Below are positions 20,251-21,271 of a DNA stretch of 64,000 nt, one piece after another; position 1 is the first letter of the stretch, and every line of letters starts with the position of its first letter. Location: the NCBI GenBank assembly GCA_964199315.1, contig OZ116700.1, positions 12,462,001-12,526,000 on the forward strand, in the 5' to 3' direction. Source of the stretch: Orbicella franksi. Lineage: Eukaryota. Under the pieces are notes generated by a model. It was not told where the DNA came from, searched no databases, and saw nothing but the letters and a program-made list of their open reading frames with translations. Made by a program: the position numbers and the translations under genes.

Positions 20251-21271
20251 TTAAACTCCAATGACCTCTCTTTCCGCATCTGAAGCAGATGTCTGCTGGA
20301 GAAGGCATTCTACGGCCTGAAAAACGAAAAAACAAAGAACGCACAGCAGAAAACCTTCACTAAAGAAAAAATAAAAACGTGGAAAAAATAAACAAAACAA
20401 ACAAGAAAACTACGAGCACCGTCGAGTAGTGTCGCACTTGATGAATATATCAACCTATTCACTCCTTATATATATTCCAACTGGAGTCTCGAGAGACTCC
20501 ACGTGCTAACACAAGATGTGTTAGCATAAATCACATGCGTGCTCACGCTGAACTTCCGAAGGAAAATACATTTTCCTTCTCCCTCACTCCGTTCGTACGA
20601 AGGAAAATCATTTTCCTTCTCCAGAACGCTGAAGCATAACACAAATACACAAGACTGTGAGGCAGGCAGAGTGAGAGCATCTGCCTGCCACGTTGAAAAA
20701 ACAAAGAAAGGGCAAGGAGCATACCTCGAAAAAGAGACCGGTCGTCAGCAGCACGAGAAGAATGAGCGCTGAGGGGAGTCTTATTCTTCTCGGATTTCTT
20801 AAAAGCATTTTGCTTCTTCTTCTTCAAAGCCCTCTCCGGCGCCTACCTGATCCTCTTCTCGTCGCCCGAATCACTAGCTAACTCCTCCGCCTCGTATTCC
20901 TTCACCGCAAGCCAACCTGCTTCGCTCTTGTCTGCCAGTTTTATGATCTTCTGACGATGTCGCAAACTTTTTCTTAAGTCCTCAACCTTTTCAGCAGCTT
21001 TGTCGACGTCGCGCAAGCCAAGAAAATTAGCGGCTTCGTCTACCGTCGCCTGAAGTTCGGAGTTAAACAGGAACTGGTCTTTGTTGCCTTGGAACTTAAG
21101 CTTGCCGGCCTCAGACGCTCTTTGCAATTTTCCAGTTTCACTTGACGATTGCGAGCTTAATCCCGACGAGAGATTTTCAATCTTGTGGTCAAGGTACGTT
21201 TTAAAACGTTCGAAAACGTCCTCCGTAGCAGACTCTTTAGGGTTCTTCGAAATTTCGGGACTCGAGGGCAT
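20129..21271 (-). pseudogene. Gag-like gene of the retrotransposon, two predicted exons (21271-20725, 20316-20129), one premature stop
   Basis: ATG at 21271; KLADKSEAGWLAVKEYEAEELASDSGDEKRIR motif; TAG at 20843-20845 with the frame continuing after it. Donor CGAG|GTATGC, acceptor TTCTTTGTTTTTTCGTTTTTCAG|GC. The join is in frame to CFRCGKRGHWSLSC. Confidence 0.8.
20395..20685 (-). repeat. Internal B1-A2 repeat junction of the YR retrotransposon
   Basis: B1 20685-20571 directly abuts A2 20570-20395; each matches one terminus of the element. Confidence 0.92.

Follow-up and report, generated by a model that had tools for sequence, protein, structure and literature searches.

A 408-nt GT-AG interval in the gag gene of a Pat1-like tyrosine-recombinase (YR) retrotransposon from the coral Orbicella franksi is probably a genuine spliceosomal intron, in phase 1 and conserved among anthozoan Pat1-like elements. 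It houses the internal junction (B1-A2) of the split direct repeats, and its removal would divide the roles of the element RNA. This reading is drawn from comparison of sequences within and among anthozoan genomes. The element lies in the window, i.e. the whole 64,000-nucleotide stretch of contig OZ116700.1 (assembly GCA_964199315.1) analysed here. Retroelements normally lose introns, as their replication passes through processed RNA. The present intron would escape this loss, as the sequence required for rebuilding the element ends lies within it.

Overall architecture of the element

Judged by its domains and repeats, the window element is a Pat1-like (PAT) tyrosine-recombinase retrotransposon of the DIRS order in its echinoderm form, with a reverse transcriptase (RT), a YR, split direct repeats and a Gag zinc finger. 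A methyltransferase-like domain sets DIRS and PAT apart from Ngaro and VIPER, and a Gag zinc finger is a Pat1-like trait, as opposed to Toc and Kangaroo. The parts follow each other in the order A1, gag exon 1, B1-A2 within the predicted intron, zinc knuckle (ZnK), RT/RNase H/putative methyltransferase (MT), YR and B2 (Table 1). The split direct repeats, arranged as A1...B1A2...B2 and not as inverted repeats plus an internal complementary region (ICR), are present in the window and in four further families. B1 and A2 together span 291 bp. The junction between them is a palindrome, GAAGGAAAA-TGTA-TTTTCCTTC, of which a second copy is located about 40 nt upstream.

The domain assignments were examined against Pfam. 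RVT_1 was matched in a copy of the same family (E=6.7e-14) and in L048, a member of another family (E=1.2e-15), in which RT_RNaseH was matched as well. Phage_integrase yielded E=4.5e-4 for the window ORF at 17849-16845, which is below the Pfam cut-off, and E=3.6e-8 in L048, which is above it. The Dam match in the pol of L048 is sub-threshold (E=1.7e-4, 21.7 bits versus a cut-off of 28.1), and a faint Dam match was also seen in a related contig. The zf-CCHC profile scored 23.2 bits versus a cut-off of 20.8 in the knuckle ORF of another copy, where the CX2CX4HX4C pattern is present. The zinc knuckle is part of Gag only when the intron is removed.

The window copy is dead. At least four separate ORFs are all that is left of its pol frame, and gag exon 1 contains a private in-frame stop at 20845-20843 that is absent from the nine other copies. 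The first-pass annotation had proposed that spliced RNA makes full Gag. The exons do join in frame, but because of the private stop this copy could not give full Gag even if spliced.

Table 1. Coordinates of the retrotransposon and its parts in the window.
Feature	Position	Strand	Remarks
Whole Pat1-like YR retrotransposon copy	16625..21465	minus	4841 bp; from repeats, domains and copy comparison; degenerate
A1 terminal repeat	21285..21465	minus	177/181 identical to A2
Gag exon 1	20725..21271	minus	547 nt; ATG 21271-21269; ends ...DRSLFR + G
Predicted phase-1 spliceosomal intron	20317..20724	minus	408 nt; GTATGC...Y-tract...CAG
B1 internal repeat	20565..20685	minus	entirely within predicted intron; hairpins and palindromes
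A2 internal repeat	20395..20575	minus	entirely within predicted intron
Gag exon 2, CCHC zinc-knuckle ORF	20129..20316	minus	CCHC 20287-20246; stop 20131-20129
Second intron system	17853..20088	minus	one donor, ATCATTAAG/GTAGAA (AAG/GTAGAA), exon ends 20089; two acceptors
Tyrosine recombinase ORF	16842..17852	minus	starts directly at acceptor 2
Poly(A) signal ATTAAA	16755..16760	minus	10-15 nt upstream of B2
B2 terminal repeat	16625..16745	minus	117/121 identical to B1

The predicted intron is conserved in five diverged families

The first-pass annotation had described a GT..AG interval that encloses B1 and A2, and the repeat coordinates place both repeats fully inside it. Its removal was said to join gag in frame to the CCHC knuckle. 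This holds, as the 547-nt exon 1 sets the donor in phase 1 and exon 2 reads from 20316 as G-RRMPSPADICFRCGKRGHWSLSC, that is G-RRMPSPADI-CFRCGKRGHWSLSC to the stop. The 3' end of the interval at 20317 is TTTTTCAG, with a long pyrimidine tract and CAG. The unspliced frame, as the same annotation had it, stops without the knuckle, at 20545-20543.

About 200 gag-N homologues were listed in anthozoans, comprising stony corals, an octocoral and sea anemones. We compared the window family with the families L043, L045, L046 and L048, using DNA of different assemblies. The Gag identity is 42-58% among the five families, and 44-58% for the other four against the window family. The order A1, gag-N, donor, B1, A2, acceptor and CCHC is common to all of them. 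In each family the donor is TTTTTCGAG/GT (the slash marks the splice site) with an invariant GT, and the acceptor consists of a pyrimidine tract followed by AG/GCYGTCGA with an invariant AG. Pyrimidines make up 68-92% of the last 40 intron nucleotides. The predicted introns are 408 nt in the window family, 459 nt in L043, 401 nt in L045, 375 nt in L046 and 403 nt in L048, which modulo 3 leaves 0, 0, 2, 0 and 1, covering all three residues. The phase is nevertheless 1 in the five families, and the spliced product always reads LFR-G-(R/C)R.P...D.CF.CG..GHW. The donor is located 32-79 nt upstream of B1 and the acceptor 60-137 nt downstream of A2, and the unspliced gag-N frame meets a stop 6-192 nt beyond the donor. 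The donors match the consensus only moderately (GTATGC, GTACCG, GTTTGT). With donor, acceptor and phase invariant in five diverged families and lengths in all mod-3 residues, the comparison supports the spliceosomal intron that the first reading of the window had suggested. The loci L042 (a 5'-truncated relative of 73% identity), L047 (no knuckle or repeats within 2.4 kb) and L049 (degenerate) were uninformative for the intron.

Start codons of the knuckle ORF differ among the families. An AUG between acceptor and CCHC occurs in the window family only, as an ATG three codons after the acceptor. L046 has no AUG at all for the knuckle ORF, and in the other three families an in-frame Met is found only upstream of the acceptor, at non-homologous positions. 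A start codon of its own for the knuckle ORF was thus rejected as a general mechanism, the post-acceptor ATG being restricted to the window family. An alternative acceptor that would place exon 2 in the pol frame was also discarded, as the AG 7 nt downstream is present only in the window family and is not conserved. A frame change past the second donor in L046 was considered as an intron and rejected, since it looks like a homopolymer indel.

L048 is carried by a JGI contig of 4938 bp, the first base of which is that of A1 and the last of which falls within B2. The two A repeats of this copy agree at 195/195 positions, and a run of about 35 A precedes the recombinase ORF. It may represent a young copy, or an assembly break or collapse at the repeats.

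Colinearity of the predicted spliced product with uninterrupted Gag

The spliced gene model P0028 was used as the query of an exhaustive search without profiles. It matched dozens of proteins that carry the gag-N domain and the knuckle in one uninterrupted chain. Among them are RefSeq proteins of a mussel and a crinoid, a contiguous ORF from an assembled contig of 1 kb, and ORFs on genomic contigs that have RT/RNase H/Dam and recombinase genes beside them. The five predicted spliced products align without gaps around the knuckle with P0144, P0151, P0139 and P0142, and the FR-G-RR-.P...D.C spacing is identical between the spliced predictions and the uninterrupted homologues. Therefore, the exact junction is fixed independently of any splice-site model. 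No other single argument speaks as strongly as this colinearity for the joined protein being the real Gag.

The joined sequence is also present in two public coral gene models, P0028 of Montipora capricornis and XP_073244415.1 of Porites lutea, the former being identical to the spliced prediction for the L043 family. In the Stylophora gene model P0011 the same donor is joined to a host adrenodoxin exon, and several NCBI gene models of homologues (P0006, P0008 and P0010) correspond to the unspliced read-through ORF. When transcript assemblies were searched for proteins that span the junction, the gene model P0028 was the sole match. At present gene finders give either gag-N in truncated form or, in occasional cases, the product of splicing, from which it follows that Pat1-like Gag and Pol are mis-modelled in cnidarian genomes.

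Copies in the Orbicella franksi genome

Searching the whole assembly (about 497 Mb) gave 40 matches, which were sorted into about ten independent insertions; five copies on C14 share their flanks and count as one insertion, and so does a pair on C6. Five loci are full-length, one of them segmentally duplicated on C6. In three copies (A-y-B) A runs directly into the knuckle exon and pol, one or two are of the form A-gagN-B, and two are internally deleted.

Donor, acceptor and phase, the conservation of which had been proposed as a check, are identical in all ten genomic copies that span the interval; as these copies are 92-98% alike, such within-genome conservation carries little weight. The one large difference between them is a 40-bp tandem unit of B1 (window 20600-20640, minus strand) with the palindrome GAAGGAAAATGATTTTCCTTC. 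Five copies have two of these units and the five others a single one, and the unit length is not a multiple of three.

Abundant intact intron-less copies had been named as one of the findings that would speak against the intron. No intron-less copy was found among the about ten independent insertions in this genome, a small number on which the argument for self-preservation rests. Other anthozoan assemblies, with about 120 gag-N homologues listed, showed none either. A contiguous gag-N+CCHC ORF was likewise absent among the close anthozoan homologues.

The copies on C14 (L006-L008, L010 and L014, at 16.19, 16.45, 16.69, 17.01 and 17.33 Mb) go back to one spliced-form insertion. Their flanks are 98-100% identical and their spacing is about 250-320 kb, indicating a large segmental (tandem) duplication array, one member of which has since collapsed to A-gagN-B. 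Half elements of two kinds occur, A-ZnK-pol-YR-B at three loci (L036, L037 and L038) and A-gagN-B at one or two (L039/L014 and L040). They match the two products expected when the two B-A junctions of a circular intermediate recombine with each other, or from direct-repeat recombination after insertion.

RNA data and a second splice system

Two RNA-seq runs, of which one was poly(A), yielded contigs that continue unspliced across donor and acceptor, and no joint was reported at the junction 20724/20317. Two poly(A) raw-read runs contained 0 and 5 reads on the element. The unspliced contigs represent absence of evidence and not refutation, because unspliced genomic RNA is expected under the cycle proposed below and contigs drop minor isoforms.

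Further downstream, genomic copies of the element reveal a second intron system, in which a single donor is combined with two acceptors. In L037 (on C4) the sequence resumes at acceptor 1 as ...TATTTATTCAG/ATGCAAG, with the intron end at 18927 and 1162 nt removed. The C14 copies (L041) resume at acceptor 2 as ...TTTTTGCTTCCTTAG/GATTTGACT, with the intron end at 17853 and 2236 nt removed. Both deletion joins are exact GT..AG exon-exon junctions with pyrimidine tracts, and the two deletion forms, which arose independently, have the donor in common. Hence the deletion copies are retro-copied spliced RNAs; to judge from these joins, the element RNA is evidently spliced at the second donor. Both spliced-form retrocopies still keep the 408-nt interval. 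They are non-autonomous derivatives of the window family that have been shaped by splicing.

Two RNA runs, each from a different study, also have contigs with the 1162-nt joint, which could equally reflect transcription of an L037-like copy. Acceptor 1, probably a cryptic site, does not keep the frame of RNase H. Acceptor 2 is located directly before the recombinase ORF and in frame with YR. In L045 the homologous N-terminus of the recombinase likewise has an acceptor of this kind ahead of it, and AG/GT is present at homologous K/E-V codons in four of the five families. The second donor lies 228 nt into exon 2, and its splicing to acceptor 2 points to a subgenomic message for YR.

Transcript ends, Pol and a proposed division of RNA roles

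A poly(A) signal, ATTAAA or AATAAA, is found 13-16 nt upstream of B2 in each of the five families, and none of the five has one before B1. A TATA box lies within A, about 80 nt before its inner end, in three of the five families (in the window, A1 at about 21366-21356). If these signals are used, the only complete copies of B and A in the RNA would be the B1-A2 pair within the intron.

With the knuckle frame as reference, pol is read in +1, and its frame overlaps the entire knuckle ORF (157-187 nt) in the five families. It is also open over the knuckle ORF in an uninterrupted relative, the loci being L031, L043, L045, L046, L048 and L050. In the five families its opening is 0-126 nt short of the acceptor, at a distance of 134-338 nt past the unspliced gag-N stop. 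As it lies beyond this stop without overlap, Pol is unreachable from the unspliced RNA by recoding from gag-N. Neither the ZnK frame nor the pol frame has a conserved AUG in the five families. An open pol frame of this kind suggests an unusual +1 recoding route to Pol; a +1 shift site was not identified in the knuckle overlap.

We propose the following cycle for the element. Transcription would start inside A1, downstream of the TATA box. It would pass the poly(A) signal, which is about 15 nt ahead of B2, and end as soon as B2 is entered. The primary transcript would then contain a complete B and a complete A only at the internal junction. The unspliced RNA would serve as the replication template, in which B1-A2 supplies the sequence to rebuild the truncated termini or the circle junction, and it would encode truncated gag-N only. 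The spliced RNA, from which the junction has been removed, would be unable to regenerate a complete element. It would be the sole message for full Gag, with N-domain and CCHC knuckle, and the sole route to Pol, presumably via +1 recoding within the ZnK overlap. We infer from this arrangement both the separation of RNA roles and the self-preservation of the intron. The former gains support because pol is without a conserved AUG and opens only at the acceptor, and because of the placement of the poly(A) signal and the TATA box. The analogous ICR of DIRS-1 was found experimentally to be essential for retrotransposition (PMC7192593).

In its strictest form the proposal makes the intron of anthozoan Pat1-like elements a replication cassette with mutually exclusive RNA fates, where the unspliced RNA is copied without giving Pol, and the spliced RNA encodes Gag-ZnK, Pol by +1 recoding and, via the second in-frame splice, the recombinase, without regenerating the termini. 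We put this form forward tentatively and stop a little short of favouring it. If true, all proteins would act in trans and the intron would be immune to loss by retro-copying. The expression strategy would be opposite to that of retroviruses and copia and, in the searchable literature, has not been described for YR elements. If the intron is indeed kept for its content, it would settle for YR retrotransposons the old question of how translation and reverse transcription share a single transcript. In addition, it would offer a simple test of the split-direct-repeat replication model, the spliced RNA being a natural junction-deletion mutant.

Alternative explanations

It is conceivable that no splicing takes place and that gag-N and ZnK-Pol are separate cistrons, ZnK-Pol starting downstream of A2 by means of an internal promoter in A2 or ribosome reinitiation. 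A2 is indeed 98% identical to A1, TATA box included, the RNA contigs are unspliced, L036-L038 begin at A and run directly into ZnK-pol, and the window family has its ATG three codons after the acceptor. However, the other four families lack this ATG, and in neither frame, ZnK or pol, is there an AUG that all families share. Separate cistrons would also leave unexplained the invariant GT and AG, the pyrimidine tracts of 68-92%, the constant phase across length classes and the fact that the joined product aligns to uninterrupted Gag without a gap. We therefore consider this explanation unlikely.

A further possibility is that the splice sites are real and used rarely or facultatively, so that gag-N is the working structural protein, the knuckle form is minor and there is no strict division of labour. 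The inability of unspliced RNA to give Pol in any of the five families argues against it. So does the knuckle with its exact LFRG spacing, which is conserved as in the uninterrupted relatives and implies selection on the joined protein. Despite the weak to moderate donor sites, the exclusively unspliced contigs in two RNA runs and the commonness of solo A-gagN-B derivatives and gag-N-only gene models, facultative use appears improbable. Chance or decay, in which the B1-A2 block landed in or rearranged a dead gag and the GT..AG and the frame are coincidental, would agree with the degenerate window copy, and the copies of the same genome are too similar (92-98%) for their conservation to mean much. 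However, the same architecture with open exons recurs in five diverged families from different assemblies, and their phase and junction peptide are identical although the frame offsets differ, by which coincidence is effectively refuted. A conserved phase-1 intron around B1-A2 is the reading that we compare with known systems below.

Comparison with known elements

Echinoderm-form Pat1-like elements of the SpPat1 type have been reported in sea urchin, Lottia and Nematostella (PMC4157794). Similar to the coral element, whose own MT is a candidate, they contain RT/RNase H, a Dam-like MT and a YR on one strand, have a Gag zinc finger, occur in a cnidarian host, and show the arrangement A1...B1A2...B2 with the internal pair near the 5' end. 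Unlike in those descriptions, the internal pair of the coral element lies inside gag, between the N-domain and the knuckle, and is flanked by conserved splice sites. The word 'intron' occurs 0 times in PMC4157794, PMC3266345 and PMC3783388, where the placement of the internal repeats is described and no intron is. The ICR of DIRS-1 resembles B1-A2 in being an internal copy of terminal sequences that is thought to template end regeneration (PMC7192593). It differs in being near the 3' end and outside the coding sequence, without an intron, in an element with inverted terminal repeats.

Among the Ty1/copia elements, a spliced subgenomic gag RNA is known from Drosophila copia, Arabidopsis EVD and barley BARE (PMC5580714, PMC3735527). 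As proposed for the coral element, alternative splicing in these elements and in retroviruses separates translation from replication or adjusts the Gag:Pol ratio. There the unspliced RNA is the Gag-Pol message and splicing removes pol, whereas in the coral element splicing would be needed for complete Gag and any Pol, and it is a cis-acting replication module that would be removed. The spliced integrated retrotransposed elements (SpIREs) of L1 (PMC5860796) resemble L037 and the C14 copies, in that they are genomic copies with exact exon-exon joins made by splicing inside the element. The coral element belongs to another class and uses one donor with two acceptors. Since one of these keeps the recombinase frame, a functional subgenomic message is suggested. 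Penelope-like elements also retain spliceosomal introns (PMC4209133) and thus keep an intron through the replication cycle, but for them no link between intron content and end regeneration is known. Splicing-separated RNA pools (copia, EVD, BARE and retroviruses), spliced L1 retrocopies and introns of Penelope-like elements are therefore already known. For an intron around the internal repeats of a YR retrotransposon, no description was found in the searchable literature, which did not include the principal YR reviews, and its novelty is provisional.

Neighbourhood of the element

A rhodopsin-family 7TM receptor (7tm_1, E=1.5e-19) is located at 15574-16527 of the window on the minus strand, split over two ORFs. 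It starts about 100 bp downstream of the end of B2, placing the element just upstream of the start of the receptor gene. On the other side, two direct-repeat families with a spacing of about 460-485 bp occupy 22563-23157, and a 42-nt inverted repeat is found at 22856-22985, just upstream of the element. Both kinds of repeat are apparently unrelated to the element.
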